Notes under the pieces: generated by a model
The model's database searches: none
The model's input: the letters and a program-made list of their open reading frames with translations, nothing else
What the model was told of the DNA's origin: nothing
DNA from: Monocercomonoides exilis PA203
Taxonomy: Eukaryota; Protista; Preaxostyla
Length of the DNA: 64,000 bases
Direction: 5' to 3'
Assembly: GCA_001643675.2 (NCBI GenBank)
Contig: LSRY02000012.1
Span: forward strand, 310,001-374,000
Shown here: in pieces, positions 1 to 33,148 of the stretch
How the letters are laid out: the number at the start of each line of letters is the position of its first letter
Numbering within the stretch: the stretch's first letter is position 1
Program-made: the position numbers and the translations under genes

Positions 1-1990
1 GTACCAGAGGCGTCTGGGGTGCATGCGTAGCACATGCCTCTGTCGCTGAAACTGCTGTGTGGATATGTTGTGGCGCGGCAGGCGGTGCTGTATAGGGGTG
101 TTGTGTATGCCTACGACGAAGCACTTTCGACAAAGCTCTTAATTCTACTGGTGATGCAGCTTCCATCGCTTGAATCAATTTAAGGAACGAAGTCGGGGAG
201 TTAACAGATCTTTGCTGCGGCGGATGTGAATGCGTTCCTGTCGATCTACGATCTGTTTGACCTATCGCTACTGCCATCTGCGATAGCACGGCTGGTGATT
301 AATTCGCAGCATTCGAGGCGTGTGGTGATGAAGTTGGATGACGAAGTAATGCAGCGAGGGGTTGCGGTGTGTGATGTTGGGGAGATTGTGGAGAAGGCGC
401 CTTTAACAAATGGGAAGAGGGAAATTTATTTATTTTTTCGCCAGCAGCGTTAGAGCATGCAAAGCTGGAGGAGCGAGAAGAGGAAGAGGAAGGAAATGCA
501 CCAGAGATGATGCAGTATATTGAGCCACAACAAAGATGATTGCGTTCTGAATGAGAATGATCAGTTAGTTTATCAGCTCCGATAAACGAGTCGCTTCTCC
601 AAAATGCCCTTAACAAATAAGACAAACAAACTGCAATTTCTCTTTCAAGCTAATGTCAAGCATTGACAGGCTATGCAACATACAAAATAGATGGCAGAAG
701 CCACGAATATCATCGTTGGATGCAATCCAAACAAGGATAATCTCAAAACTTATGGTTCTTTTGAAAAAGGAAAAAAAGGTTTCTCTCCATGACATTCCTG
801 TTCATGATCAATCTGTATTCATTCAAATATCACCTTTAAATAAAAATGAATGAAAATAAAAGTCAAAATATCTTTTTGGTCTAAAAATATTTTCCCATCT
901 CCAGTGCACTCGAAATCATGAAATCTGCAGGCTTTCTTGTTCTCCAAAATTGCCTCTCTCCTTCCTCAAAAGATTGACAACTGTACAACAAATGGCTGAT
1001 GCATAATGTCATCGAACGCAGAGAATCCATTGTGAAGCTGGCCGTGATATCAGATGAAAATACACATTCTCCAAATAAACAAGAAATGTACTCTTTTTCA
1101 AAGACTTATTCAACGATATGTCTTTGCTGATAGCTTTCCAACGGGCTTTGTGCAAAATGCAAATGAGATTGTTGTTAAGGCCTGCTGAGTGCTTCGTTCA
1201 ACTCGCTTCCTCCATTGTTCAATCCCCAAATTCCCTTTCCTTTTCCCAAAACCAACCTTCCCCAAAATAAATCACTGAAAACAAGTCCTGCGCAAAAGAT
1301 ATGCCAAGAACACTGCACTTCCCTGAAATGAACAAGCAGTTCAATTCTATCTTTCTGGCATTCAACTCGCTTTTTCTGCATCTTGCTTGGATAATTTTTC
1401 ACTCAAAATATCGCAGCCGGTGTTGCATAATGTATTTTGCAATTTTTAACCAAGTTCAAATTTCATGCAACTTCCTCCACCAATTCACTTTTCGCAAACA
1501 ATCAATGCATACAGCCACTCGCTCCTCCATCTGCAAGCAAAATCCCTGTTCTTCTATGGCGATATAACTTGCATGCGTGCATCTGTGGGTTTACCATCTA
1601 GCAGCTCAAATATACTCTGAATGCTGCAAATCATCAATAAAAAATCTCCATTTATAAAATTACAGGTTGTTAACCCTTATTAATTTGCTCGATAAGGAGA
1701 TTTTTATTTCAAAGATTTTCTTGTTTTGATGCAAAAATCACAAATGGCAAAACAGGTTTAGAATCCTGTGTTATTTTAATTTTTCAATTTTTTGTTTTTA
1801 ATTCTTTTGATTCGAATATTCGACGAATCAATCGAAAATGTATTTCTCATAATTTTAAATTTATTTTGCTGTGTGCAGTATTCTTCAAAGAAACAAATTT
1901 TTTGGGGTTTGCTGGAGTTTGTAAGAAACGAATGGTTTAAAAATAAATGCTTCTTTTATCTCTTTTGATTTAACCAAATTTTTAGAAAAT

Positions 1991-3300
1991 TTGTTGCAAT
2001 TGGAAAATTGCGATAAAGAAGTGCAAAAGCAGAAGATAGAAGAAATGAATAATATGATCAATGAAATGAATGAAGAAGAATTTGAATTCGTTTTCACAAT
2101 AAGAATGTTCAATAAAATAGACAAAATGATTGAAGAAAAGAAATTATCATTTGAAAATGCCATTAGGTTGTTAAAGCATGTTGGATTTTGTAAAGTTCTT
2201 TTGAACTTGTGGAGTTGTAGCTTTTATAATTCCTTGTTACGCGGAAGATTTGAGAAAATGATAGTTGATGAAGATGAGAAAATAGAAAAGAACGAAAAGC
2301 TTTTGGCTGATCTTTGCGAATGCAATCTTTGTTTCAGCTTCGTATTGTCATTGAAGTTGATATCAATTTGTGTGCCTTGTCTTTTGAAAGTTGCCTCGAA
2401 GAAAGAGGAAAACAAGGAGACTCAGAAAGAAGCGGAAATGGCGTTGTTGGCTTTAAATTTAATACATAAACATGAGGCATTTTTGTTCTTCTTCCTTTTT
2501 AATGTTTTTGCTTTTATTTCTGATTTTTTAAGTAGGGTTTTGATGAAAAACAGTATTATAATGAATTCAATGAAATCATCCGATATCATCAGGAACATCA
2601 CAATTTAACTCAACTTGCTTATCTCTCTGCTTGGAATTTTTTAATAGACAGAATTTACAACAATGGATCATTGGAAATAATTATTGCAAATGATCAGCAT
2701 TTAGCGAGAGAAGCAGCAAGAGAATTGGAAGAGCTGAAAAGAAATGTGGATTGGAACAGAAAAAAGGGAGAGGAAAGAGGAAAGGAAGCGAAAGAAGAAT
2801 TAGCATTGACGAGATGGCTCGAAACATTGAATTCTTATTTTTTCAATTGTCAATTGAGGAATGAAGAATATGTTGGTCTTTTCAGCAGCATTGTTCGGGT
2901 ACATCGAACAGCAAGAGAAAATTACAAAGAAATCAGCGATTTGTGCATTTGTTCATTTAGAAAAGCAGCAAAAAGCAATGGTGTGCAAGTTGAAGACTTA
3001 CTGAAAGGAAAGGCAATTGATGCTGTTTTGGAAGAGATTCATCGATCAACACTGGATGACGAAATAACAATTGAATGCTTGCAATTCTTTATGAATATTT
3101 CAAAAAGACTGAAAGACGAGGAGAAAGATGAAATGGAAAAAGATGAAAGAAAGGCAACGAAAAGGAAGGTTTTTGATAAGATGGAAGAAGAAGGATACGA
3201 AGAAGTTATCACAAGCTTTCGTGAAATTTTTAATTTTCTCAACAAAAAATATTATTGTCAATTATCGTTGAATATTTCTGGTTATTTGGAGCATCCGTAA
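1991..3300 (+). CDS. Lineage-specific helical multigene-family protein (2 visible exons, 5' end unresolved; may be a pseudogene)
   Basis: ORF 1991-2608 joins the 2671-3300 frame across an intron at ~2477-2535 (GC-like donor); exon 2 reads GFDEKQYYNEFNEIIRYHQEHHNLTQLAYLSAW. Clearly paralogous to 4571-5887 (shared motifs LADLCEC/FVDLCEC, EMALLAL, AREAARELEEL, KMEEEGYEE). Confidence 0.7.
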
Positions 3301-4394
3301 GGCAAATGTTCCCCACAATTCGGATGTTGAAAGCAACACAGAAAAGCTGATGAAGAATGGAATGAAAAAAGAGATTCAGAAGATTCAGATAAAGACACAT
3401 GAGCAAATGAAAAGGCAAATGAAAAAAGAAGAGAAGGGAAAAGAGAAGGGAAAAGATTTCGCATCGAATCAACATTTTCAGTTGAACACGAAGAATTTGA
3501 ATAAATAAATAAATAAATAAATAAATTAAAAAAAAAATTAAAAAAAAAAAAAAAAATACCTCTTTTATTTCTTTCAATCGTCTCATTTTCTTCTTCCATT
3601 TCGACTTCACTCACACACTCCCTCATTCACTCGTACATTCACACAGCATCTGTCTTCATTTCAACATTTGTGATCTTCCTTTTCTTCTTCTTCTTCTTCT
3701 TCTTCTTCTTCAACTTTCTGTTTCGACAAAGAAGACAACACACAACTCAGATGAATTGGGATTGAGTCACTTTCAGATGATGGATAGAATGGAAGTGAAG
3801 GGCAATGAAACAAAAATTGAATGAATTTCAATTGAAGATTTCTGAGCAAAAGAGAAAGGAAAACAGAGATAGAATTTAATTGAGGTTGACTTGTTTCAGC
3901 CAAGCAGTTTTTGAATAAGATTTTCATTCTTCTTCTTCGTCGTCAGATTTATTGCTGTTTTATTTTGAACAAAAGAAGTTGATAACAGGTTTCTTCAACA
4001 AACATTTCTTTCTTTTTTATTTCTTTTTTTTTTTTCTCGAGAAATAGCATTTCATTCTTCTCCTTCGTCTTCTCTTGTTCATTGAAAATATAATCAGAAA
4101 GAGAACAAGTTAAAGAGTTCAGAGGCTTCAAGAGGCAAAAACTAAACAATTGAACACATTTAAATAAAAATGAATCTTGTTGATGAAGATGGAGGGCATT
4201 AATCTATTCAACGAAGATTCTTGATGGAACAAATTGATAAGAAAAGAAATTCTATTTTTTCTTTTTCTTTCCTTTTTTTTTGAAAAAGGAAAGAAAAATA
4301 TTTTTCATAACATTTCAATTTTTGTTTTCCTCCCATTTTGTGAAATGAATTTAAAAAAGATTGTCAAATTCTGGAATTACAAATAATAAAAAAG

Positions 4395-4570: not shown

Positions 4571-5887
4571 TCAAATATTTATAAAATAATAAGAAATATT
4601 CGATGATATTTGTGTGAAACGTTCTTCATTTAGAAAATCGAATATTTCATGAAAGCTTGTGATGGCTTCTTCGTATCCTTCTTCTTCCATCTTTTCAAAC
4701 AACTTCATTTTCATTGCCTTTCTTTTCCTTTCGTCCGTTTCGCCATCAGTCTTTTCTTTCAATCTTCTTGAAACTTTCATAAAAAATATTAAGCTGTCAT
4801 GTGCAATTTTGTCATCCAGTGTTGATCGATGAATCTCCTCCAAAACAGCATCAAACGCCTCACCTTTCAGTAAGTTTTCAACTTTCACATTTCTATTTTC
4901 AGCTGCTGTCCTTAGAGAATAAATGCACAGATAGCTAATTTCACTGTGATTGTCTCTTGATGCTCGATATACCTGGACAATGCTGCTAATAAGCCCAACA
5001 AATTCTTCATTCCACAATGTGCGTTGCCTTAAGAACTCATAAATTACGTCAAGCCATCTAATTATTATTTTTGCTCTTTTCTTTTCTCTTTTGCAAATTT
5101 CATCTCCTTTTCTCGTCCAATCCACACATCTAACTAACTCTTCCAGTTCTCTTGCCGCTTCTCTCGCAAAATGCAGCTCATTCACAATCATTTCTTCCAA
5201 GCTTTCATCGTTGTAAACTCTTTTTATCAAAAACTTCCAAGCCGACTGATAGGCAAGATGAGTGAGGTTTCGATGCTCTTGATGATGCTGCATGATTTCT
5301 AACATTTCCTTCAAATACTGATTTTTTCCTATTTTCTAATTAAAAATATAATGGGGAAAATCTATGAAAAGAAAATTAAATAGAAATATTCACACATAAT
5401 ACTCAGTATTGCTAAGAGCCAATAATGCCATTTCCACTTCTTTCTGAACTTCCACGTTTTCCTCTTTGTTTGATGAAGCTTTCAGAAGGCAAGACACACA
5501 AATCGAAAGAACTTCACCTGAGAAGTAGTAGCTCAGTGAAAAATAGCACTCACAAAGATCAACAAAAAGATTCTCATCTTTCTCTTCTTTCTTCTTCTCA
5601 TTTTCATCAATCAACATTTCTTCAATTCTTTTGATCAACAAAGATTCTAAAAACCCATCCGACCATCCACTTTTCAACTCTATACAATATCCAACATGCT
5701 TCAATAAAAGGCACACATTCCTCATTGACAGTTTCTCTTCCTCAATCATTTTGTTCATTCTATTGAACAGCCCTGTCGTAAACGCAGAATTGAATTCTTC
5801 TCTGCCCATCTCCTCTACAAGCCCACTCATTTTAAGGACTTTCTGTTTTTGATCTTCCTCGTTGCAATCTTCCAGTTCACAAAACAA
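4571..5887 (-). CDS. Paralog of the 1991-3300 family gene (2 visible exons, 5' end unresolved)
   Basis: ORFs 5390-5887 and 4571-5314 separated by a short AT-rich intron at the equivalent position; colinear similarity to 1991-3300; convergent orientation. Confidence 0.7.
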
Positions 5888-8421: not shown

Positions 8422-10818
8422 GGCATAGGTCTAAATTGTACCAGTAGTGAATATGATATTATTTGATGAATATTTGAAATATTATTGATTGTCATAATTA
8501 ATTAACACTGTACTATCAAAAAAATTTCATAAATTTTTAATTCAAAAAGCAAACAAAAATTTTTGATCAAACCCATAAAAATACTTTCATTTTTTCATTT
8601 TTTTATTTTATGAATGTATTTGAGCTATGTTTTGATTATTAACTGCATTTATTGTTTTGTTGTTTTTTTCATTTCATCTTCTTTTTAAAGAAAAGAACAA
8701 ATCAGAATATTGTTTTATATTTTCTTTGAATATTCAAATTGCAAGGTTTGAAAAGAATGCATTGAATAACATGTGAAATATCAAGACAATTTGAAAAAGT
8801 CTTCATTTATATTTAGAAATATTTTCTTACAAGAATTCAATATCACTCCGTCTTTCGAAAATGATATCCAATGCGAACTTGGCTTGTTGAAGAAGTCAAC
8901 TCAGCTTTTATTCCCACTCCATTCCCATTCGCACACTCACATCCTTCAATTGTTGTATTCCACACCATAAATGTCTCTCCTCTCTTTATCCTCTTTGCCA
9001 TCACCACTTCATCTCCTGTTGTCCGATTCACATTTCGTATTGTCAAATTTCCAGAAGACTTTCTCCTGATATTGATTCTGTTGATGATAGTTCAGTGAAC
9101 AGAGGTCGATTCGCTTTCATATTTTTTATCTCGACATCAACCATCTTTAGCCATGAGAAGAATGTCATAAACACAGATGAACATGTCACACATTCTCCAC
9201 AAACACTCTACGAGATCAAAACATCCTCCGGAGAAAGAGCCTCGCTCTCCACAGGCACCACAAATACGCTCGGTGAAGAATCTCTTGTCGCGTAGTGATC
9301 AATTCCCACATGCCCTACCGCTTGCTGCCCGCTTGCCACACTGAACAGCGTTTTTGAAGATGAAGAAAGTGAATTCGTCCCAATCACACTTACTTCCTTC
9401 CCTTTCCCCAAAACAGAAATCTTCATAAATCCAAAATTAATTGTTGCTGTCTCTTCATTGCAATGATTCCCTTCCAACAGAGAAACCACTTAACTTGTCT
9501 GTGTTCTACTCCAATTGACTGCAATGTCAATGGCATGGAATGCAGTAATCTCATCCGTTTCGCACAACTGGTCTGTGCTGCTATCCGCTCACTGCGACAA
9601 ATCGGTTGAGAATCCCTCTCTTCAGCTAATCCTTCTTTTCCGTGTGCTGAACAGACCAGTTGCTTCCCGTATAATTGTATGCACAGCACGCCCTCTGTTC
9701 ATCTGTGTTTGTGGTGGAGCATTATTTGAACGGATTTCCTGTGCTCAAAAAAACATTGTAATAATCTGCAAATTCTAAATCATGCCCATATGGAATATTA
9801 GCAGAGCATTTGCATTCATGAAAGAAAAGGAAATAACAATAGCACCTATCAACTAGCCCTGTTGCTTGATTTGGATCCAGTCTCATTCCCCCACCTTGTG
9901 ACGAAGCTGTACAGGAGATAAACTGAATGCTCCTCATTTTGAATTGATAAGGAACAGTAGCCCAATACAGGCCTCCTTCATTTGATCCAGAAAGTGAGCA
10001 TGAAGTGAAAATGCAGTCGAATACACATGCACTCTCTCCTCCTTCATTTTCTGCTTCAATGCATCCTATTCCTGAAACGTTAAAATTATTAAGATTAAGA
10101 ACACCTCCATAGCTATTTGCTTTTCAATTCTGGAATTCACATCCTCTGATCTGAGCACACGTAGAAATTCAATTCACATATAACCCTCCTCCATATTGAT
10201 TTTGTGCTGTACAGGCGTTGAACACATTATTTTCGATATCCACAAAATCAATTGATAGGCACATAATTCCACCTCCACAACTGAATGAAAAACAGTTATT
10301 AAACAGACAATGTGAAACAGATAGTTCTCCATTTCCCTTGCTGTACATGAAAATAGCCCCTCCACTCGATTTTCCATCAGTGCACGAGTCGCTTTCTCCT
10401 GTTGTCTTCGATCCACCCCATTCTCACCTAATTAATTATTTTTCTTCATTTATAATTTAGTTCTCTGTTAAAAACTTCTAATTATCAAGCATGCATCATT
10501 GTTCTAATATAATTTGATCACAACCAACGAAAAGCAAATTTATGAAATAAAATCATTGAAACACGAAGAAATTTATTTTATGTGAACATTAATTCGGTTA
10601 TTAACAATTTAACTGTCACAATACGTTTGTAAAAATAAAAAATGAAAAAATAAAAGTGTTTTTATGGGTTTGATCATATATTTTTGTTTTATTTTTTAAT
10701 AAAAGATTTTTGAAATTTTTTTGATAGTACAGTGTTAATTAATTATGACAATCAATAATATTTCAAATATTCATCAAATTATATCATATTCACTACTGGT
10801 ACAATTTAGACCTATGCC
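8422..10818. mobile_element. Pack-type TIR element (2.4 kb), ~200-bp GGCATAGG-ended TIRs, 8-bp TSD CTTCTTTC
   Basis: GGCATAGGTCTAAATTGTACCAGTAGTG... at 8422 with its reverse complement ending at 10818; outer ~100 bp nearly identical; cttctttc at 8414-8421 and 10819-10826. Confidence 0.95.
8843..10416 (-). pseudogene. Captured, frameshifted fragment of a Cys/Gly-rich beta-helix-like (pectin-lyase-fold-like) protein gene
   Basis: Series of short same-strand ORFs with motifs such as FISCTASSQGGGMRL and CIFTSCSLSGSNEGG, resembling the cargo at 23876-27463; many stops and frameshifts. Confidence 0.65.
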
Positions 10819-21250: not shown

Positions 21251-23117
21251 TGAGTCAACATTATGTTCGATCGATCCATCAGTTTACCCGATCACATTTT
21301 CATCAACAACTTCAATCTCAACGAAATCGTCTTAATTTCCATATTCTTCTTTTTTTTCTTAATTTTTCCCTCTTTTTCCCCCTTTCTCTTTGTTCATCTT
21401 CTAATTTTTTTTCATTCTTTTTCATCCACTTTTCTCTTTCAATCCATGTTTTTTAATAATTTTCTTTTTCTTCATAATCAAACAGAATTTGTTTTCTTTC
21501 ACTCAATTATTTGTTAGACATCTTTTTTCATCATTTCACCAATTCCTAACTCTCGCTTTTTGCTTTACAAGATTCTTCATAAATGCCTTTCAAAATCTTC
21601 AAAAAAAGTTTTTTTTCTTTTCCAATGATTTTTATTTTTTCGGCTGCTCATTCTTCAATGCGCCTCTCCATTTATTATCTTCCGATTTCATAAACGCACT
21701 CAGCTCTCTCTCTCTTTCCACATTCCATTAGCTTTCGTTGGTATCGAACATACTTGAAAAAAATAACCTAATTTTAATTTTAAACAATAATTGACGAAAT
21801 AATCATAATTCAGACAATTAGTAAACCAATAACTTTTGTTGTGATTATTCTTCACAAATTTTCTTCTTTTTTTCTGAGAACGAAATCTGTTAGTCTCGTC
21901 TTTGCTTCGTTATTAATTCCTAAAAAAAAATAGTCAAATCCCCACTTCTTTTTATTCTTTCACTCAAATGACTCCAATTGCTCGCCTCCTAAAAACAAAC
22001 AAAGAAAGTTAAAAGGCGTTGATGATGCTGATGTAGATGAAGGCAAAAACGGATAGGAAAATAAGGAAGGTTAAGAAGAATTTAAAAAAAAAGATAACTT
22101 GTTGAATGAAACATGGCGAAAATGATAAAAGCGAATAACGTTTATGAAAAATACATATATTTAACAAAGAAAAGTTGATCGGAAGGAGCGCAACAAAAAA
22201 AATAATCTGGATTATTCATTTGAAGGTTGAAAAAATTACAGAAAACAGAAATAACATTGAATAAATTCTTGTTTGGTTCTGGAAGATTATGAAGATGCAA
22301 TTTGATAAATTTCACTTGTCATAATCTTCCAGAAGTTGCGGAAAATGAAACAAGGAGAAAAAGAGGTTTTTTGGTAAAGGGTTATTCGAATGTCAGTTCA
22401 ATGAAGAATAAAAGATGAAGAATTTAATTCAGTTGCAAAATTTTTAAAAACTTGAATTGTCAATTGTGAACAATTTTACTATCAAACATAACGTTGAAGA
22501 ATTATTTTGAAAATAATAAATAATTGAAACTGGAAAGTTCACAAACTGATATCGCTTCACGTTCCGACACATTGTGAAAAATTACTGTCTTTCAGAGAAG
22601 TCTTGTGTTCCTTTTTTTGTCAATAGAATGATAATGAATTTTATTTTGTTGGATAATCAAAACAATTTCATATAACCTATTATTCATTTCGCTCATCTTT
22701 TTCAATTTATTTTGCGGTTAATAATTTTCATTCCTTTGTTCCTTTCATTCGTTGCTTTGTTATTTTCAATGCAACATTTTCGATTTAGCTGAACTTCTGT
22801 TTTTGAAAAACAATTACATAAAAATAAGCTCTATTAATTGATCAAATATTTCCTTCTGCAGTGTTTCATAATTGAAACATCTTCTCTTTTCGAATCAGCT
22901 GCAAACAACAAAAAGTTAAAAAAGTTTGATATAAAGAGAGGAACAACAGAAAAGATGAAAACAAACAGTTTTCACAAGAAGTTCACTTTAAATTAATGAA
23001 TTTTCCATTTCCGCATTTACAAAGTTAAAAAATATTCGACAAAGTTTCGATAATTAAGTTTTTTGTATAAAAGATGGGAAAAACCATTATTACTTCGTCA
23101 ATTTGTTTGGTTTCGCA

Positions 23118-25395
23118 GGCATAGGTTCAAACGCGTTCCTTTTGCAATTTGCGTTTTTTAACCCTCAAATTATAACGAATTAATAGATAATAATTATTAA
23201 AAAACTTTTTATGGACCGATTTTTCGAAAAAAATTTTTCTTGTTGAAAAAAATGATTGTTGAAAAATGACCCATAAAAACATGAATTTCAAAGAAAAATA
23301 TTCAAATTGAAAAGAAAATGTGATTTTTGGACATCCAATGTGTTTTTATTTTAATTTTATTTTATTTATTTAATTAATTTTATAAGAAAAAAACTTTAAT
23401 CACGTGTTAAAATATTAATAAAATGACTTTGATCTAACCCACAATAAATTTATTTATTATATGAAAAGTAAAATATGCTGTTTGAGCAGAAATCGAACTC
23501 AAAAGTTTGTGGTTTGTTCGCTTTTATGTGTTAAAATAAGTATATAATTATATGCCCACTTGTTTTATTTTAAAAACAGCTCCTTTTTTCAAACAGATTA
23601 TCATGTTTTTTTTCGCTTGAATGTTTTAAAGCTGCAAATTTTTAATTTCAAATAAGGTTGCAATGGAACGCAAAAGGTTTATATAGTTTTTTTCATCAAA
23701 TAAATATTAATTTAGCTAATTTCCTACGAATTTTTTCTAAATTTTTGGAATATTAATATTTTTTTGTATTAGGCTCGATCATAGCATGCTTAAAAAAATC
23801 AATGTTGCAAAATTAAACATTACCTACACAAAATAGCTCAATATTTAGAAATAAAAACATGTACTAAATAAAAGTTTGGTTTTTTTTACCATTAAAAAAG
23901 AATTGTTTGAAATTGATTTATTTTACTCTAACAGTGAATTTGATGTTGTAATATGTAGAAGCGAGGAAGAACCATGCCAGACGATGAAGAAATGGATGGA
24001 AAACATGGAAAAGGAAAGTGGAATGAAGACAATTCAGATTGAAGGATCAACTATTATTCGAGATTCATTCAATGCATCCAATTGCCAGATTAAAACAGCT
24101 GCATCGATGTGAGAAGAAAATGTGAAAGCCAAATTGAATTTTGAAAAGGCAATTGGAAGTCAGCTGGAATATTTCGTGGGAAATAATATTCATCTTGAAT
24201 TGATAAATATCCAATTACAACTAGCATCGGGATTTGACAACTCGGCCAAAACAATTATTTCTAACAGAGATGGTGAATTGGTGATAACTGGATGTTCATT
24301 CCATTCAGAAGCAGGAGTGAACAATGGATTTGATTGCATATTTGTGGATGTGATTGGAGGGAATGTGGAAGTGAATGATGAAGGATCATTCACACAAGAA
24401 TGACTTGTTGGCTGTTCGAGTTCACTGGCAATGAGGAGACTTTCATTAGTTGCGAAAGGTCAGATGAATCCAAGGAGAAGTGCATTCATTCATTCAACAT
24501 CAACACTCAGTCTGACGAACTGTTCAGTCTCATTTGAGAGTGGGGCATTGACTGATGGAAAGATCGGAAACAATGTGATAAACATTGAGGGAGGAGAACT
24601 GATTGTTGATGGATTTGTGATGGAAAGTTCATTGAAAATGAATGAGAATTCACCAATAACGATGACAAGTGGAGTGCAATTGGAGATTTTGAATAGCAGA
24701 GTGAGTGGAGTGGAAGTGAATGTGGCAGGTGGAAGTGGAGGTGGGGGATGCTTGAATGTTGGGATGGGCGTTAATGGGAATGTGAAAATTGAAGAAAGCA
24801 ATATATCCTCGACATGCTCAGGTGGAAGTGGAATGAAAGGAGGAGGGATTATGATATCAGTGGGGAATGGGGGGAACTTGGAAATGAATAATGTGAAATT
24901 ATCAGAATGCGAAGTGTCATCGAGTGAGGAAGAAATAAGAGGAAAAGGATTTGGAGGAGGGATATTTGTGAGTTTGGGTGAGACAATTGATATATTTTCA
25001 TTGGAGAGCATGACATTTGTTGGGTGCAATGCCTGGAAAGGGAAGAATGTGTTTGTTTCGGGATGGGATCTGAGTGAGATTGCGGACAAAGATAACTTCA
25101 AATGGGAGATGAGTCCACGGGAGTTGGGATCAATGGATGAGTTGTGTGGATGGGAGGGGAAGACGACAGGAGAGAAGGGATATGTGATTCCACTTGTTGT
25201 GTATTTGTGGAGCAATTGCAGCAGGAATGGGTTTGTATCGAAGGAGAAAGGAGGAGACTTCAGTGGTTGTGGGTTTTCTGAAGCACCGTTTATATCGATT
25301 GACCACCTGATATCACTTCGATATCCAACGCTTGGAGAAGGGGAAACACATATTTCCATTGTGGGATCAGGTTTGCTGAGCCATTTCATTTCATT

Positions 25396-25445
<50 letters not shown>

Positions 25446-28400
25446 TAGATTCACCAGTTGTGAAGATTGAAGGAGAAGAGAAAGGAAGGATTTTGAGGAT
25501 TGAAGAAGAAAAGGAAACAGACGGAGAAAATGGAGTGGCAATGATATCATCAGATGTTCATCTTTCATTCGTTAACTTATCATTCAATTTGCAGAGTGAA
25601 TTGGGGAAGCATTCATCACTCATCACGATATAATCATCATTATCATCCTTAGCAACACTATCAATAATGAGCTGTTCGTTTGCTTGTGAAGATAAAGAGA
25701 AAAAGACGAAATATTGTGTGTTGAAGGAGTGAAGAGGATGTATTGTGATTGATGAATTTGTTCTTACTCACTTCAATCTGGCAAAATGTTTTTTGGAGTT
25801 TGGAGCAGAAGTGGAAGTGATTGATGTGATGAATGTGTCTGCTTCGAACACAATGATTTCAGGAAGGAGTCTGATATCGCTGAGTCAGCCATTGCTATCA
25901 AGCATGTTGATCGACAAAGCAAGAGAAAACGCAAAACAAAGAGTGAGGGTGAACAGCTCCTCATTTGTGAACATCACATGTTTGGAGAACAGAGCGTGTG
26001 CGTTGAGCGTGGGATCGTTCTCAGTCGGGATGGAGTGTGCGGTGGAAGGGTGTGTGCTGACGAAGTGCATGAGCGAGAGAAGCTTGGAAGGAGGAGGGAT
26101 GAAGATGCTGATGAAGAGAGGAGAGTCGGAAGTGAAAGTGAGTGGGTGTTCATTTGGGATGTGCGTGTGCTCAACAGGGAATGGAAGGGGAGGAGGGATA
26201 ATGATTGATGCACTCGATCCAAATCGAGTGCCAGATCAAATGCCAGCATCGCCACTCGGGCTGAGAATGGAGAACATCCGATTCATGATGAATGATGCAT
26301 TAGTGGGAAAGGATGTGTTCATCCGATGTGACTTGATTGAGTTGCAGCTGAATGAAAGGCTGTTTGGACTGGACTTCAGCCAGGAGGCACTGAAGTTAAA
26401 CAACTCGATGTGTGAGAGCGATGGAGAAGTGAATATTGATGTTGATCTGATTCCGTTGATCACATTTTATTATTCTTCACAGGTGTTTGTGTGTGTGAAA
26501 GGGAGCGACAGTATGCAATGTGGAAGACAGGATGCACCATGTGAGAGCATTGGAAATGGAGTTCAACACATTCAAGGAGGCATTGCGATAATGATAATTA
26601 TTGATGGAGAAGGGATGATGGGAGAGGAATGTGTGATTGGGGATGTGAGGATGGTGTCGATGGGGAGGGAGAAGGCGACAGTGCATTTTGAGGGGAAGAT
26701 GGAGGAAAGAGGAGAAGAGAGGAGCGTAATGGTTTTTGTGAATGAGAGCGTTGTGGAGAGGTGTTTGTTTGTGTTTGGAAGTGAGTTTGAGGCAAATCAC
26801 AAGTTCGTTTTGAAAGTGAAAAACGGATCAATGGAGATGCGAAGTTGCGAGTATATTTCATCTGCTGTTGAGCTGAAGTTGGACAACACGATTGTGATTA
26901 TGGAAAGCGGAGAATTGAGAATGTGGGAAATGGAATTCAGCAGTTTGCATCTGAGAGCACCATTGATTGTGTTGTGTGAAGAGTCGAAAGTGTTTTTGGG
27001 AGAAACAAACATATGGAATGTGACGTGTGAAGGAGATGCAGCTGTTGTTGTTGTTGGAGGGAAAGCAGAGCTTGAGATGAAAGAAATGAGCTTTGAGAAT
27101 ATTTCACTGTTGACGAATGGATGTATGTTGGTGATTGATGGAGCAGAAGAAGAGATACGAGTGACTAATTGCTCGTTTGAGAAATGCGTGAATATGAATG
27201 GGAAAGGAAGCATGATGGAGATGAGAGAAAGCAGGGAAGTGCAGTTTGAGGCATGTTTGTTTGATGGAGAAAGAAGCGAAGAAGGAGAAAAGAAAATCAA
27301 TGGGAAAACGAATGAGGAAGAAGAGATGTGCAAATGGTCTGGATCTCTTGTGAATATTGCAAAGAGTTCTGTTTTCATGAAAGTTTCAACAATCACAAAT
27401 TCACCAGAAGGTGAAATAACAATGAGTGGAGAAAGAATTAGAATAAAAACAGAAAACATTTAACATTATTTATTGAGACTTCTTCATTTTGCAGAAACTG
27501 CAATAATCAAATTCTTTTGTTGCAAATTTTATGTTGTTATTGTTTGAAATTGTTTTGATAGAGCTTCATGTTTATAAATATCTTATTCATTTTTGCTTGA
27601 TGTTTCATTCACGATTTTGAGGATAAAATGATTTAAATATTATTGAAAAAGACTTAATAAGAATTATTTCAAAAGTAGTTTCACAATTTGAAAAATTTAT
27701 ACGCTTAACTCGCTTTTCATTGTTTTAATTAAAAACTTTTCTATTTAAATCTGTAACATGTAATTATCAACGAAAATATGAAATGAATAAAATAATGAAC
27801 TTTTTACAAACAAATTCTCAATTATTCTCAATTCAAAATGATTTGGATACCTTTTAAGATTTATAAAACCAAATAATTTCCCGTTTCAATGCATTTAAAA
27901 AGAGAAATTCCGAATTAATAGTTATAAACAAGTGAACATATGTAAGTTTTTCAAAGATTCAAACAAATTTATCACTATTTATTCGTTAGAAAGTTTTGCC
28001 AATGTTTTTCGAGCCATTGCAACCTTATTTGAAATTAAAAATTTGCAGCTTTAAAACATTCAAGCGAAAAAAAACATGATAATCTGTTTGAAAAAAGGAG
28101 CTGTTTTTAAAATAAAACAAGTGGGCATATAATTATATACTTATTTTAACACATAAAAGCGAACAAACCACAAACTTTTGAGTTCGATTTCTGCTCAAAC
28201 AGCATATTTTACTTTTCATATAATAAATAAATTTATTGTGGGTTAGATCAAAGTCATTTTATTAAATTTTTTATTTTCAATTTATGTTTTTGTGATGAAA
28301 ATAAACAAATAAAATAAATTTATATTATAATAAAAACACATTGGATGTCCAAAAATCACATTTTCTTTTCAATTTGAATATTTTTCTTTGAAATTCATGT

Positions 28401-28561
28401 TTTTATGGGTCATTTTTCAACAATCATTTTTTTCAACAAGAAAAATTTTTTTCGAAAAATCGGTCCATAAAAAGTTTTTTAATAATTATTATCTATTAAT
28501 TCGTTATAATTTGAGGGTTTAAAAACGCAAATTGCAAAAGGAACGCGTTTGAACCTATGCC
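23118..28561. mobile_element. Pack-type TIR element (5.4 kb), ~550-bp GGCATAGG-ended TIRs, 8-bp TSD GTTTCGCA
   Basis: 23118-23666 is the reverse complement of 28014-28561, near-identical except one ~65-bp patch; gtttcgca at 23110-23117 and 28562-28569. Confidence 0.97.
23876..27463 (+). pseudogene. Captured internal fragment of a large beta-helix-like (GGG/CxFxxC repeat) putative surface-protein gene
   Basis: ORFs 23876, 24122, 24431 and 25745 lie in one frame separated by stops; repeated GGGIM/GKNVF/DxxxCGxxxxPC modules; both ends abut AT-rich element sequence. Confidence 0.8.
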
Positions 28562-28569
28562 GTTTCGCA

Positions 28570-31500
28570 TCGAATTTCTATTCAGAAATAACTGAATAAA
28601 TGCTTTTTTCGGATCTATCTGCATCTCGTTAAAGTGAAAAGTGCGCAGATGTCTGGAATTTTATTGAGGAAAAATCCACTTATCACGCTGTGAAAATGTT
28701 GAAGTTCATGTTCCTTCACACAAATAAAGGAAAAAAGTTTTTCACAAAGATTCAGAAAATTTTTGATGGTTTGTTATTGGTTTTTTCATTTATTGAGGTT
28801 ATAACTTCCATTGTTCAAAATGGCAACTTCAGAAAAATGGAAATGTATTTTATAAAGAATAGCAAGTCTATATAATTCGGAGGACAACAAGCATGTAAAA
28901 GTGGCACTGTTGAAAACAGTTTGCCATGAATATAGCTTCGATCAATTGGAGAAGTATGGATTTAATTGCACAATAGGCAATTATAAATATGCAAAACAGA
29001 GCTCCTCGAATTTAAGTTTCGATGTTTCTCAAAATAAAAGGCAATCTTTTAATAACACAAAATCAAGTTTGTTGGTTCAAAATGCAATTTAAAGGATTAT
29101 TTCGATTCATCAACTTATTCTATTGTTTAACTCAGAATTAAGTTTTGAAGATGAAATCAAGTTTGAAAAATTCATTATGACCAACTCAACAGAATCTTCT
29201 GAATGTTCAAGATTTGAGAAAAAATACAATAAAAGTTTGTCATATTTGTTAATAAATTAAAAACTTCATATTTTTTTCGATCATAAATCTTTTTTGAAAA
29301 AATCAGAGAAAAAATCACTCGAAACTTATAACGACGATTTCATAATTTTGAATTGTGAAGATTTGCATGAAAAAGACGTTGATCCACTTCGTAGCTTTTT
29401 CGAATCAAATTGAACTGTTTCGAACAACATTTCGGATTCATTTGCAGATGATAATGTGCAAGGACAAATGGAAGATGATAGTGACAATGATTTATTCTTG
29501 GACGTTGATAAAACAGATGATATCGACTCGATTGATCATTCTTCCATCAGAACGAGCAAACAAATTGAGTGTTCTTGCAATGGAACACAAGAAGCGCAAT
29601 CATTTTCTCAAATATCAGACATAGCAATGGATATTGAATTACCTTCAGATGAATCATCCAGAATTATTCATGATGATTCAAATACTTGTGATGTGATTTC
29701 CATCTCTGAAGAAAATGAAATTATTGTTGATATGGTTGATACACAACCATTTATGGATTATTGTCCATTTACACCTTTGCCAAACATTGGAAATACCTGT
29801 TGTGTTGCATCCTTGGTTTAACTGTTTCGATCATTATTTCAACGATGTGGTCAATTGAAAAGGCGAGTGGGGAAGTTCGCTCAAATATCATTGAATCTTC
29901 ATTCTCTTTGCGCACCTGAAATAATAATGGACAAAGCTCGAAACTCGAAAGAAGAAGTGAAATGGACGAATGAATTCTTCACTCGTTGGTACAAGAAAAA
30001 CAATCTATCAATTGGTTGCCAACAAGAATTGTACTGTGTATTCGCAAAGATGTTTCAAGATTTAACATCTGTGACACCAGAACTGAATAATTTAATGAAC
30101 ACAACAATCTGTTATCCAAGAACATGCACGATTTGCAAAGAATCCTTCAATGGAGCATCAGAAACAACTCCAATAATCAGGGTTCAAGGATCCAGCATTC
30201 GTGATGCATTGAATAATTCCTTTGAACTTGATGAAAACAATTCGAATAATCGCAAAGCCTTTTGTTCCAACTGTGATGCTGACACTTATCATTTATCTAA
30301 ATTCAAAATTTCTCACTTCCCTCGATTCTTGACTTTTTCACTTGAACGAATAACTAACCAAAATTTAGAAAACTACAAGATTCATTTATCATTGTCATTC
30401 TTCAATGAAAAAGGACATCAGAAGGTGAGTGACATTACAACAAAAGATGGAGACAATTATTCACTTATATCACAACTGTTTTTCACAGGAAATGACAACA
30501 ATGGTCATTTCTTTTGTATTTGCAAAGAAAGAAACAAATGTTCTCAAGATTCCTCAATGATAAATGATTCATGGTTTTTATGCACCGATGGAACAGTGTC
30601 AAAAATATCCAATGAAATTTCAACAGAATTTACTTATCATTTGGCAAATGGAGCAAAACCATATATATCTGTTTACGAAAAGATAGAAAAGAGTGTGAAT
30701 GATAACATCAGCAATGTGTTATCTCCAAACTTGATATCAACAGTTGTTCATAACGAATTGAATTCGAGAGATAACAGAAGCATTAATCAATCATTTCTGA
30801 ACCTGAATGAGGACGAACAAATAACACCGTTTATTCAATCAAATAGTGATTCCTCTTTTGCCAACGATATCGGAGATTCATTTCAACTTCCACCCAACTC
30901 AACATTTCACTCATCTCAGCAATTAACCTCAACATTTCAACATATCAATTCCACATATTCTGCTTCAACTCAAACATTTCAGTCAGCACCTTTAACTACA
31001 AACACAAATAATAAACATAAATTATCTTCAACTGTTTTCCATCCTTCAATTTCTGACATTCCAGCTCATTCTTCCAATTATTAAAGAAAACCAAAAAAAT
31101 CTGTCAGATTAATCAACACATCGAAAGTCAAGCTGTTCGAAAAGATGAAAGATGAACTTGATATAGAGATGTCGCTAAGCACATTTTATAAGAGGACAAA
31201 AAATCTCAAAAAGGCAAAAAAAAGAAGTGATCTTTGCGACTTGTGTGTCACTTTTGAAAGTTTACATAAAAAGAAGAATTTCCTCAAGGCAAAAAACGAA
31301 ACTTTATGTGAGAAAGATCAATCAACATTGAAATTAATCGAAGATCATCGTAAACTAGCTAGACATCAACAGCTTTATTTCCGTCAATTGAAGGATAACT
31401 TAAACTCAGATGAAGCTTTGATTCTATTTGATTTTAAAGAAAATTGGTCCCTGCCAAAACGTAAAAATCAAATTTGCAAAGATTTCTATGAAAAAGTTGA

Positions 31501-32350
31501 AGTTTCTCAACTGTGTGTTATTGGATTCATCAAAGATGAGAAAGGCAACTTGGTCAAACACATATTCAACTTTTTTTCAAACACTCTATCGCACGATTAT
31601 CGCTTTTCAATTGGTTGCCTTCAAGAAGTGTTAAATCACCAGTTGTTCAGTCAGAAAGATTGTTTTCATTTCATATGCGATACAGGCCCCCACTTCAGAA
31701 ATTCCTTCCTTCTTCACTATTTGCTGTCAGACAATTCTTCATTTGCAAAAGGGAAAAAAACTACTCTATCATTTTTCTGCGAACACCACGGAAAATGCGA
31801 ATGTGATGGAGAATTTGGCCATTTATCAAAATGCATTCAAAATGAGCTTGACGATGAAACAGTTATGGAAAATGTTGATGATCTCATAGCGTTCTTTCAA
31901 AAAAATGCATCTCATTGTGCCTCATACAAAAGAAATTCTATTGATGGAAGAGAAAAGCTGCATCGTCACTTTTTAAGGTTTGAAATAACTTGTTTCGGTT
32001 TTAATTTCTTTAATAATATTTTTCATTGTTTATTCAATAAATTCTTTGTTTGAATCGACAACAGGTTTTATCCATCAAACAAAATACTTTGGAAAAAAAT
32101 GGAACTGAAAAATATGAAAACTTATTTATTTTATGAAAAGCGTGGAGGTGAAGTTTTCAGATCAGTCGCATCGCCATCCAACGGCAAAGGAAAATACAAA
32201 GTGCAGTTCGGAGAAAAAAGAGTTAGAGACGAGAGGCCTTTAAAAACATTTAAAACTCGAAACAAAACTTGCCAACCACACAGCGTGGGAAACAATACCT
32301 TAAGGTTGTTTGAGAACAGAAAAAAACTGGACAATCAGATTTTTAAATGA
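28570..32350 (+). pseudogene. Sola-like DDE transposase gene with an in-frame USP (peptidase C19) domain; intron-containing, disrupted by stops and by the 23118-28561 insertion
   Basis: Transposase motifs SDLCDLC...H, LFDFKENW, CDTGPHF and EHHGKCECDGEFG (31145-32053), last exon 32099-32350. USP motifs LPNIGNTC, QQE, CTIC/CSNC, GHFF, WFLCTD and PYISVY (29770-30680). ORFs 29456, 29855 and 31145 share one frame. Confidence 0.8.
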
Positions 32351-32475
32351 ATTTTTTTCATAATAATGTTGTTCTTTTTATTGATTCTTTTGAATTTGTT
32401 TTTATTCAAATTTTGTTTCTTGAGTTGTCTGTTGCTCAAGCTTTGAATTATTGTGAAAACAATAATTTCAAAGTA

Positions 32476-32604
32476 CCCTCTTTTGCGCCTGTGCAAAAAC
32501 ATGAGGGCTAGGCTGATTCCGTCCTGGGACTGTGCTGTGACCGGTCCAGCACAGTCCCTTGAAGGCTTTGGGTCCAGAATCAGCCTCCCAGGGCAGACGC
32601 TCTT
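32476..32604. other. GC-rich double-hairpin structured sequence 3' of the transposase
   Basis: Stems ccctc/gaggg with ttttgc/gcaaaa; aggctgattc (32510-32519)/gaatcagcct (32577-32586); gggactgtgctg (32526-32537)/cagcacagtccc (32547-32558); embedded in very AT-rich DNA. Confidence 0.7.
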
Positions 32605-33148
32605 GAAACAATTTTTGAAATAAAACAAATTTCATTTATTTTATTGAGTTCTTTAACAGTACTGTTAATATTACTAATTTTTGACCATTTTTTTCAATTT
32701 TTTTGTAGAAATTTATTGTTTGGCTCTTTTGAATAACAAGTTGTTATTAGATAAAATATTGTTTGAGTACAATTTTTTTGTTTTGAAAAAATTACTAAAA
32801 TACAAATGAATGAAGAAATAGAAAAGTGGATTTTTGATGTTTTCCATAAGAAAAAATAATCAGAAAAGTCAAACATTTAACAAAGAACAATATTTGAAAA
32901 AAATTATTTAACATTTGTAATTTTTAATGAAGGACCGAAAAAAAGGACGATTTTGATAAAAATGTGCCATTTTGTCAAGAATTCGTTTTCATCAACATGG
33001 ATTTGCAATATAATTCAAGAAAAATTTGTTTTAAAAAATGACAAGTCACTTAAAAATGACATCAGTGACGGGAAGTGCCAAAATAATCGAAAAATGACAA
33101 ATGATCAAAAAAAGTGACGATCAAAAAAGTGCGTATCTGAAAAATTCA

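Follow-up and report, generated by a model that had tools for sequence, protein, structure and literature searches.

Among described DNA transposons, the closest counterparts of the element considered here are found in the Merlin superfamily, in plants and among transposons with very long ends. The Pack-type or transduplicating elements of plants comprise the Pack-MULEs (MULE, Mutator-like element), the Pack-CACTA and the Pack-TYPE elements, and belong to the Mutator, CACTA and hAT superfamilies; the Pack-MULEs were reportedly described by Jiang et al. in 2004. DNA transposons with long terminal inverted repeats (TIRs) or a foldback-like structure include Galileo, a member of the P superfamily, and the foldback (FB) elements. 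The Merlin superfamily of DNA transposons is said to go back to Feschotte in 2004. The element in question is 5,444 bp long and lies at positions 23118-28561 of a 64,000-nucleotide stretch of the genome of the oxymonad protist Monocercomonoides exilis (C6:310001-374000, hereafter the window, to whose positions coordinates refer unless marked otherwise). It is very probably a non-autonomous DNA transposon of the Merlin superfamily with a singly captured cargo, namely a fragment of a host receptor-kinase gene, and this reading is the best explanation of the evidence as a whole. The genome counts given below cover an assembly of 82.3 Mb in 101 contigs.

In the genus Monocercomonoides, more than 100 Merlin copies in at least seven families with TIRs of 23-29 bp have been reported, and Merlin TIRs overall span 24-462 bp (PMC8101967). 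The family of the window element resembles the Merlin families of Monocercomonoides sp. PA203 in its 5'-GG termini, its 8-bp target-site duplication (TSD) and its DDE_Tnp_IS1595 transposase (PMC8101967). Its TIRs, in contrast to the published lengths, reach 558 bp in the window copy and 4,415 bp in an autonomous relative on C13, and the published copy number compares with 575-740 first-look transposase matches found here in the genome, which include many diverged Merlin families. The text of PMC8101967 mentions neither non-autonomous copies nor miniature inverted-repeat transposable elements (MITEs) nor host genes, and a search of the literature for Merlin paired with transduplication or Pack-type elements, in which journal coverage was incomplete, returned nothing relevant. 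What was already known of Merlin in Monocercomonoides is short-TIR, transposase-bearing copies only. What is new is that Merlin elements can carry host coding sequence and build kilobase-long TIRs from it, and that they appear able to yield non-autonomous derivatives with retained mobility. Transduplication, of which plant Pack-MULEs are the best-known case, is extended to the Merlin superfamily and to a deep-branching anaerobic protist.

Like the Pack-type elements of plants, the window element is a non-autonomous TIR element with a TSD, bears a truncated host fragment within a chimeric open reading frame (ORF), is presumably mobilised in trans and belongs to a group whose cargo has been annotated as genes. 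Unlike them, it is a Merlin element in an oxymonad host, its TIR family shares one capture instead of bearing many cargos, and the same cargo is also present in both TIRs of the autonomous copy. With Galileo and the FB elements the family has in common very long, near-identical arms (4.4 kb in the C13 copy and about 0.8-0.9 kb in 1.74-kb derivatives) and palindromic composites without a TSD. It departs from them in its IS1595/Merlin transposase and in arms that hold host coding sequence, not tandem subrepeats.

Termini and insertion site

The element is bounded by inverted arms of 558 bp (23118-23675, plus strand) and 557 bp (28005-28561, minus strand), which are 95-96% complementary in a repeat search of the window. 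The arms align as two collinear blocks separated by a small indel, one of 264 nt (23118-23381 paired with 28298-28561; 96% complementary) and one of 287 nt (23389-23675 paired with 28005-28291; 95% complementary). Both termini start 5'-GG and are formed by the 18-mer GGCATAGGTTCAAACGCG, which the window contains at these two places and nowhere else, against an expectation of 0.01 occurrences; the left TIR, as delimited by the repeat search and the terminus count, begins 5'-GGCATAGGTTCAAACGCGTTCC. The 8-bp TSD GTTTCGCA was read directly at 23110-23117 and again at 28562-28569. No transposase was found in the interior, where the two long ORFs have no Pfam match and the remaining ORFs are short or antisense to the cargo. 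The element has the Pack-type layout, with TIRs and TSD intact and without a transposase. An earlier note on this stretch had proposed long near-identical TIRs, a TSD and the lack of a transposase, and each of these is borne out, the TSD with the added backing of an empty site.

The site of insertion is preserved in uninterrupted form elsewhere in the genome. The left part of the target is a separate repeat with six genome copies, represented here by 600 bp of flank (22518-23117, plus strand), and the copy on C91 is 100% identical and uninterrupted. The right part (28562-32981, plus strand) is a transposon copy encoding a USP-protease/DDE-like protein; these 4.4 kb are 99% identical to C91:1642764-1647182, which begins exactly at the end of the left-flank copy on C91. 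A predicted empty site, composed of the left flank, a single GTTTCGCA and the right flank, is identical to C91:1642622-1642971 at 340 of 342 positions, with the element absent, and four further, more diverged copies of the target repeat are likewise uninterrupted. Because the C91 paralogue carries one GTTTCGCA and is uninterrupted, the element is a transposon insertion. It entered, with an 8-bp duplication, a young copy of another transposon whose sister on C91 is still empty.

In the target, a transposon-like repeat present six times and at least 5 kb long, the encoded protein (29300-32350) has a USP (UCH) protease domain and, after it, a DDE-like region. This adjacent gene was considered as a partner transposase and rejected: it is part of the target repeat, whose copy on C91 has no Merlin insert. 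A further copy of the target repeat, on C1, is interrupted at a different position by a 5.4-kb sibling of the Merlin element (C1:817245-822642).

Divergence between the flanks and the empty C91 copy is about 0.6-1%, and the closest sibling element is 12-23% diverged from the window copy. As the nearest relative is so distant, conservative cut-and-paste fits the data: an old lineage would have relocated recently and left no close twin behind.

Family and superfamily

A genome-wide count of the element ends, for which the earlier note had asked, gave 56 occurrences of the 22-bp terminus (26 on the plus and 30 on the minus strand), compared with none for a reversed-pattern control. The termini pair into about 25 elements of 1.74-20 kb. 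Six of these are near-palindromic and measure 1.74 kb, others span 2.0-4.3 kb, five are about 5.4 kb long, and the larger ones have 8-20 kb. The five copies of about 5.4 kb, namely the window copy, those on C44 and C48 and two on C1, have the same layout. The near-palindromic 1.74-kb derivatives are the commonest form of the family; located on C34, C10, C11, C1 and C22, they consist of the two arms with almost no unique centre and have no cargo. Flanks were examined for 15 pairs, and 10 of these, including the cargo-bearing copies on C44, C48 and C13, have a perfect TSD (8/8), while one has 7/8. The alignments of cargo described below cover the window copy and the elements on C44, C48, C13, C16 and C59; further elements lie on C15 (8.1 kb), C32 (8.5 kb) and C60 and at C34:538117.

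Two large structures bounded by family termini, C16:997450-1017897 (20.4 kb) and C59:411965-427696 (15.7 kb), are palindromic composites with no TSD. The C16 composite contains mirrored broken transposase copies and, near its centre, a third Merlin transposase with 49% identity. The centre of this structure was considered as an autonomous unit and rejected, given the missing TSD, the broken transposase copies and the nested position of the third transposase.

The autonomous relative, at C13:173742-184510, is a 10,769-bp element with 22-bp termini identical to those of the window element and with the TSD CGAATATT. Its TIRs of 4,415 bp are 99.9% identical and surround a 1.9-kb core with a central open frame of 487 codons, in which an intact ORF of 485 aa matches DDE_Tnp_IS1595 (PF12762) at 1.7e-21. 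Among 740 first-look matches, this transposase is the sole stop-free copy of its subfamily; those ranking next have two stops at 94% identity and one stop at 82% identity (C16:1373959). Merlin elements are recognised by a 5'-GG start of the TIR and a TSD of 8 or 9 bp (PMC8101967). The window element is assigned to this superfamily because of its GG termini, its 8-bp TSD and the IS1595-type DDE transposase of the C13 relative that shares its termini. The combination of long TIRs with an 8-bp TSD had raised a MULE or hAT identity, and the Pack-MULE analogy of the earlier note implied a Mutator-like superfamily; both gave way when the cognate transposase proved to be of the IS1595/Merlin type. 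The C13-type transposase would move the window element in trans through recognition of the shared GGCATAGG termini.

The cargo and its host genes

The interior of the element is a single plus-strand frame (23876-27463, with a terminal TAA at 27461-27463) that contains no frameshift and four in-frame stops, namely TGA at 24110-24112, 24401-24403 and 25730-25732 and TAA at 25631-25633. With these four stops, the cargo of the window copy is a pseudogene. An alternative genetic code behind the stops was rejected, as both TGA and TAA occur among them and the standard code leaves the host paralogues open. Within this chimeric ORF, a segment of 3.07 kb (24368-27431, plus strand; element 1251-4314) has 77-84% DNA identity to ORFs on C25, C45, C20 and C34, and the best host gene over the whole cargo has 82% overall identity. 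The matched host ORFs are 2,500-3,100 codons long and open across both ends of the 6-kb loci examined. As they stay open beyond both ends of the match, the fragment is internal and truncated on both sides.

Downstream of the match, the host ORFs encode a transmembrane segment and then a Tyr/Ser-Thr kinase domain at the C terminus. The cargo corresponds to part of the beta-helix ectodomain; it ends about 200 codons short of the host transmembrane segment and has no kinase, so that the full receptor-kinase architecture is absent. It is a fragment, not a member gene, of the host receptor-kinase ('PTK') family. No family termini lie close to the host genes on C25, C45, C20, C34 and elsewhere, and the cargo is thus a piece of a gene that exists outside elements. 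The host family has 4,680 first-look matches in the genome, the best-scoring of them being mostly intact clustered ORFs. The host genes belong to the 'protein tyrosine kinase' family, which has been counted among the largest of M. exilis and for which an overlap with 'unclassified repeats' has been described (PMC8767320).

An AlphaFold model of 572 aa translated from 25745-27460 has a mean pLDDT (predicted local distance difference test) of 67, with values of 85-95 over residues 300-490. Its matches in the PDB are right-handed parallel beta-helices only (PL6 lyases, polygalacturonases, pertactin and phage tailspikes), and the predicted fold of the cargo is a beta-helix. The database matches of the interior protein are all annotated Monocercomonoides exilis. 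A (TCA)n microsatellite in the cargo (25391-25450, plus strand) is translated into a poly-Ser run. These results agree with the beta-helix surface protein of the earlier note, both in the modelled fold and in the transmembrane segment and C-terminal kinase of the host genes, and the parent gene that it had wanted identified outside elements is represented by the intact ORFs of 2,500-3,100 aa. Its 3.6-kb end-truncated host piece is indeed host-type and truncated at both ends; however, the host-derived part measures 3.07 kb, and 3.6 kb is the length of the whole open-frame stretch.

On either side of the cargo lie regions that belong to the element. The 5' subterminal region (23676-24367, plus strand), which fills the 0.7 kb from the TIR to the cargo, is common to sibling elements, in frame with the cargo, element-specific at the DNA level and unalignable to the host genes; its translation has weak, repeat-level similarity to the host family (E of about 4e-8, 21-23% identity). 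This region supplies the conserved start MENMEKESG, with its ATG at 23993. The AT-rich 3' subterminal region of 0.5 kb (27464-28004, plus strand) has just 16 places in the genome, of which all those checked are at or beside mapped family termini, and the genome search did not find it outside elements of this TIR family.

Element-borne cargo ORFs have been annotated as 'uncharacterized protein' genes, as in the case of MONOS_8707 in a sibling on C49 and of a 519-aa model in the window. Such fragments, when annotated as genes, inflate the count of the receptor-kinase family, and they account for part of the 35% 'unclassified repeats' that overlap this family in the published assembly.

Acquisition of the cargo

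The elements on C48, C44, C13, C16 and C59 align with the window copy straight through the 5' junction of the cargo, i.e. in six of six elements, and the 3' junction is common to five of the six (the window copy, C48, C44, C13 and C16), C59 diverging there. In all host genes the similarity ends at two common points, about element positions 1248 and 4314. In the 1-kb segment beside the 5' junction, a clade comprising all element cargos is not rejected by the approximately unbiased (AU) test (p = 0.27). Further, most of each 4.4-kb TIR in the autonomous C13 copy consists of the same cargo. From the common junctions we infer a single ancestral acquisition of the fragment, inherited since by the TIR family, and no ongoing gene-capture system. 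The fragment would have been picked up once by the ancestor of the family and then carried into the long-TIR autonomous forms, the 5.4-kb forms and the shorter deletion derivatives. Its presence within both TIRs of the autonomous copy argues for element-borne baggage that was inherited by deletion derivatives. Different, independent cargos within one TIR family, as expected of a Pack-type system, were not found, the junctions being shared.

The window contains a second non-autonomous element, GGCATAGGT-ended, at 8422-10818, with TIRs of 199 bp at 92% and the 8-bp TSD CTTCTTTC. Two more copies of it, 99-100% identical, are located at C25:23419-25417 and C16:107658-109656. Its interior, from about 500 to 1830, has a 70-83% match to a different clustered gene family, present on C80, C71 and C53. 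Because this second GGCATAGG-ended family has near-identical copies and carries a piece of another gene family, mobilisation and cargo-carrying are recurrent at the level of the Merlin families of the M. exilis genome.

Probable exchange with host paralogues

In the middle segment of the cargo, monophyly of the elements is rejected (AU p = 1.9e-7, log-likelihood 157 lower), and the tree groups the window copy, C44 and C48 with the host cluster on C20 (starred support). The tree of the 3' cargo block is essentially a star. Sliding identity along the element gives a mosaic. At element 2701-3000 the cargo shares 90-93% identity with the C20 genes as well as with C44 and C48, and at element 3601-4200 it shares 86-94% with genes on C25/C45 (90-94% in 3901-4200). 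Within the latter stretch, which is unalignable to the C20 genes too, a block of 0.5 kb (element 3674-4192) is unalignable, at about 60% identity, in the elements on C48, C44, C13, C16 and C59. The element-specific part at 601-900 is 95-96% identical to C48 and C16 and 68-71% identical to C44 and C59. Similarly, the transposase genes of C13 and C16 are 96.9% identical (synonymous divergence dS 0.088, omega 0.2), but the arms of the two only 82-88%. The modules of this TIR family have different histories.

The mosaic identity, the rejected monophyly and the contrast between transposase and arms in C13 and C16 suggest frequent homologous exchange among elements and between the cargo and host paralogues. 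Gene conversion or homologous recombination would have swapped parts of the cargo after its capture, both with host paralogues and from element to element. A more far-reaching version, which we put forward tentatively and consider rather unlikely, is that the Merlin cargo elements act as mobile recombination partners of the receptor-kinase genes, in that their fragments are repeatedly overwritten by paralogues from different chromosomes of the host, may donate back and so move beta-helix modules between clusters; in a variant of this idea the ORF is a selected accessory one. If true, transposition would add to the diversification of the receptor-kinase family, the largest in the genome, across otherwise separate gene clusters. 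Whether transposons help to shuffle a rapidly expanding surface-receptor family can be approached concretely through the mosaic similarity of cargo and host genes.

The state of the cargo ORF varies among the elements. It is open over 1,074 aa in both arms of C16 and over 1,022 aa in C48, and badly broken in C44 and C59. In C13 there are two stops in both arms, one arm having an open frame of 872 aa and the other being split by one extra break. In crude Nei-Gojobori-style tallies, pairwise ratios of nonsynonymous to synonymous divergence (dN/dS) are 0.31-0.60 for the element-borne copies, compared with 0.18-0.44 between host genes. That this divergence mostly arose in functional host genes and was then imported is favoured over selection on the element, because the cargo of the sole autonomous copy is itself broken.

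Alternative explanations

A local inverted or segmental duplication or an assembly artefact could also be invoked to account for the inverted repeats and the flanking 8-mers, without any transposon insertion, and the composites on C16 and C59 indeed attest that palindromic structures without a TSD exist in this TIR family. The probability of such an origin is close to negligible, as it is contradicted by the exact empty site with a single GTTTCGCA in a paralogue that is 99-100% identical and by the 8-bp TSDs that other family members have at unrelated loci; the empty result of the reversed-pattern control for the terminus also speaks against it. A more substantial alternative is an active Pack-type system, in which pieces of receptor-kinase genes are captured repeatedly and independently and the window copy has made its own recent acquisition. 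Some blocks of its cargo resemble host genes (up to 94%) more than they do sibling elements, the element cargos are interspersed among host genes in the middle-segment tree, and a second GGCATAGG-ended family has cargo from a different gene family. However, independent captures would not hit both breakpoints again, and all six aligned elements agree to the nucleotide in the 5' junction and five of them in the 3' junction, with element-specific regions contiguous with the cargo on either side; moreover, over its full length the cargo has no close match among the host genes. Repeated capture within this family is consequently highly unlikely. Of the Pack-type capture proposed in the earlier note, the mobile, transposase-less element with an 8-bp TSD and a piece of a host gene stands, whereas a fresh capture within the TIR family does not. 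The note had named as decisive against it a lack of parent genes outside elements together with the same interior in all copies; the shared junctions bring the latter close to being the case, but parent genes do exist outside elements. Its wider idea of an analogous capture system gains from the second family, with its fragment of a different large family. In contrast, the suggestion that such elements drive the expansion of the receptor-kinase family fails, because about 25 elements stand against thousands of host-family matches, the best-scoring of which are mostly intact clustered ORFs; shuffling of the family by recombination on a small scale is possible.

The chimeric ORF, with its element-specific start and about 1,020 aa of beta-helix, could alternatively be an accessory gene native to the element, kept under selection and recently decayed in the window copy. 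The conserved ATG context, the long frames open in both C16 arms and in C48 despite an AT-rich genome, dN/dS values of element copies like those of host pairs, and the few stops and lack of frameshifts in the window copy despite its long branch all favour this. Nevertheless, we hold it to be unlikely, as the sole autonomous copy has two stops in both arms and a further break in one, the copies on C44 and C59 are badly broken, and the product would have no signal peptide, transmembrane segment or kinase; the omega figures are crude counts, and host-gene divergence imported by gene conversion explains the low dN/dS equally well. Several observations sit uneasily with the preferred reading of a Merlin element bearing a singly captured fragment. 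The two TIRs of the window copy differ by 4-5% although the insertion looks young, which needs a divergence inherited from a long-lived cut-and-paste lineage. The omega of the window-copy branch is 0.41-0.59 (a crude count), and, for a branch as long as about 0.15 changes per site, four stops without any frameshift are fewer lesions than full neutrality predicts; given these few lesions and the open ORFs in C16 and C48, the view of the cargo as dead baggage may be incomplete. Mobilisation by the C13 transposase is argued from the shared termini only. Further, the autonomous C13 copy lacks the 0.5-kb 3' subterminal region, and a simple deletion from a C13-like parent therefore does not explain the layout of the window element.

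Other features of the window

Another inverted repeat pair is found at 2853-3287 and 4584-5018 of the window. Its arms of 435 nt are 78% complementary, lie 1.3 kb apart and overlap ORFs of 205-247 aa.

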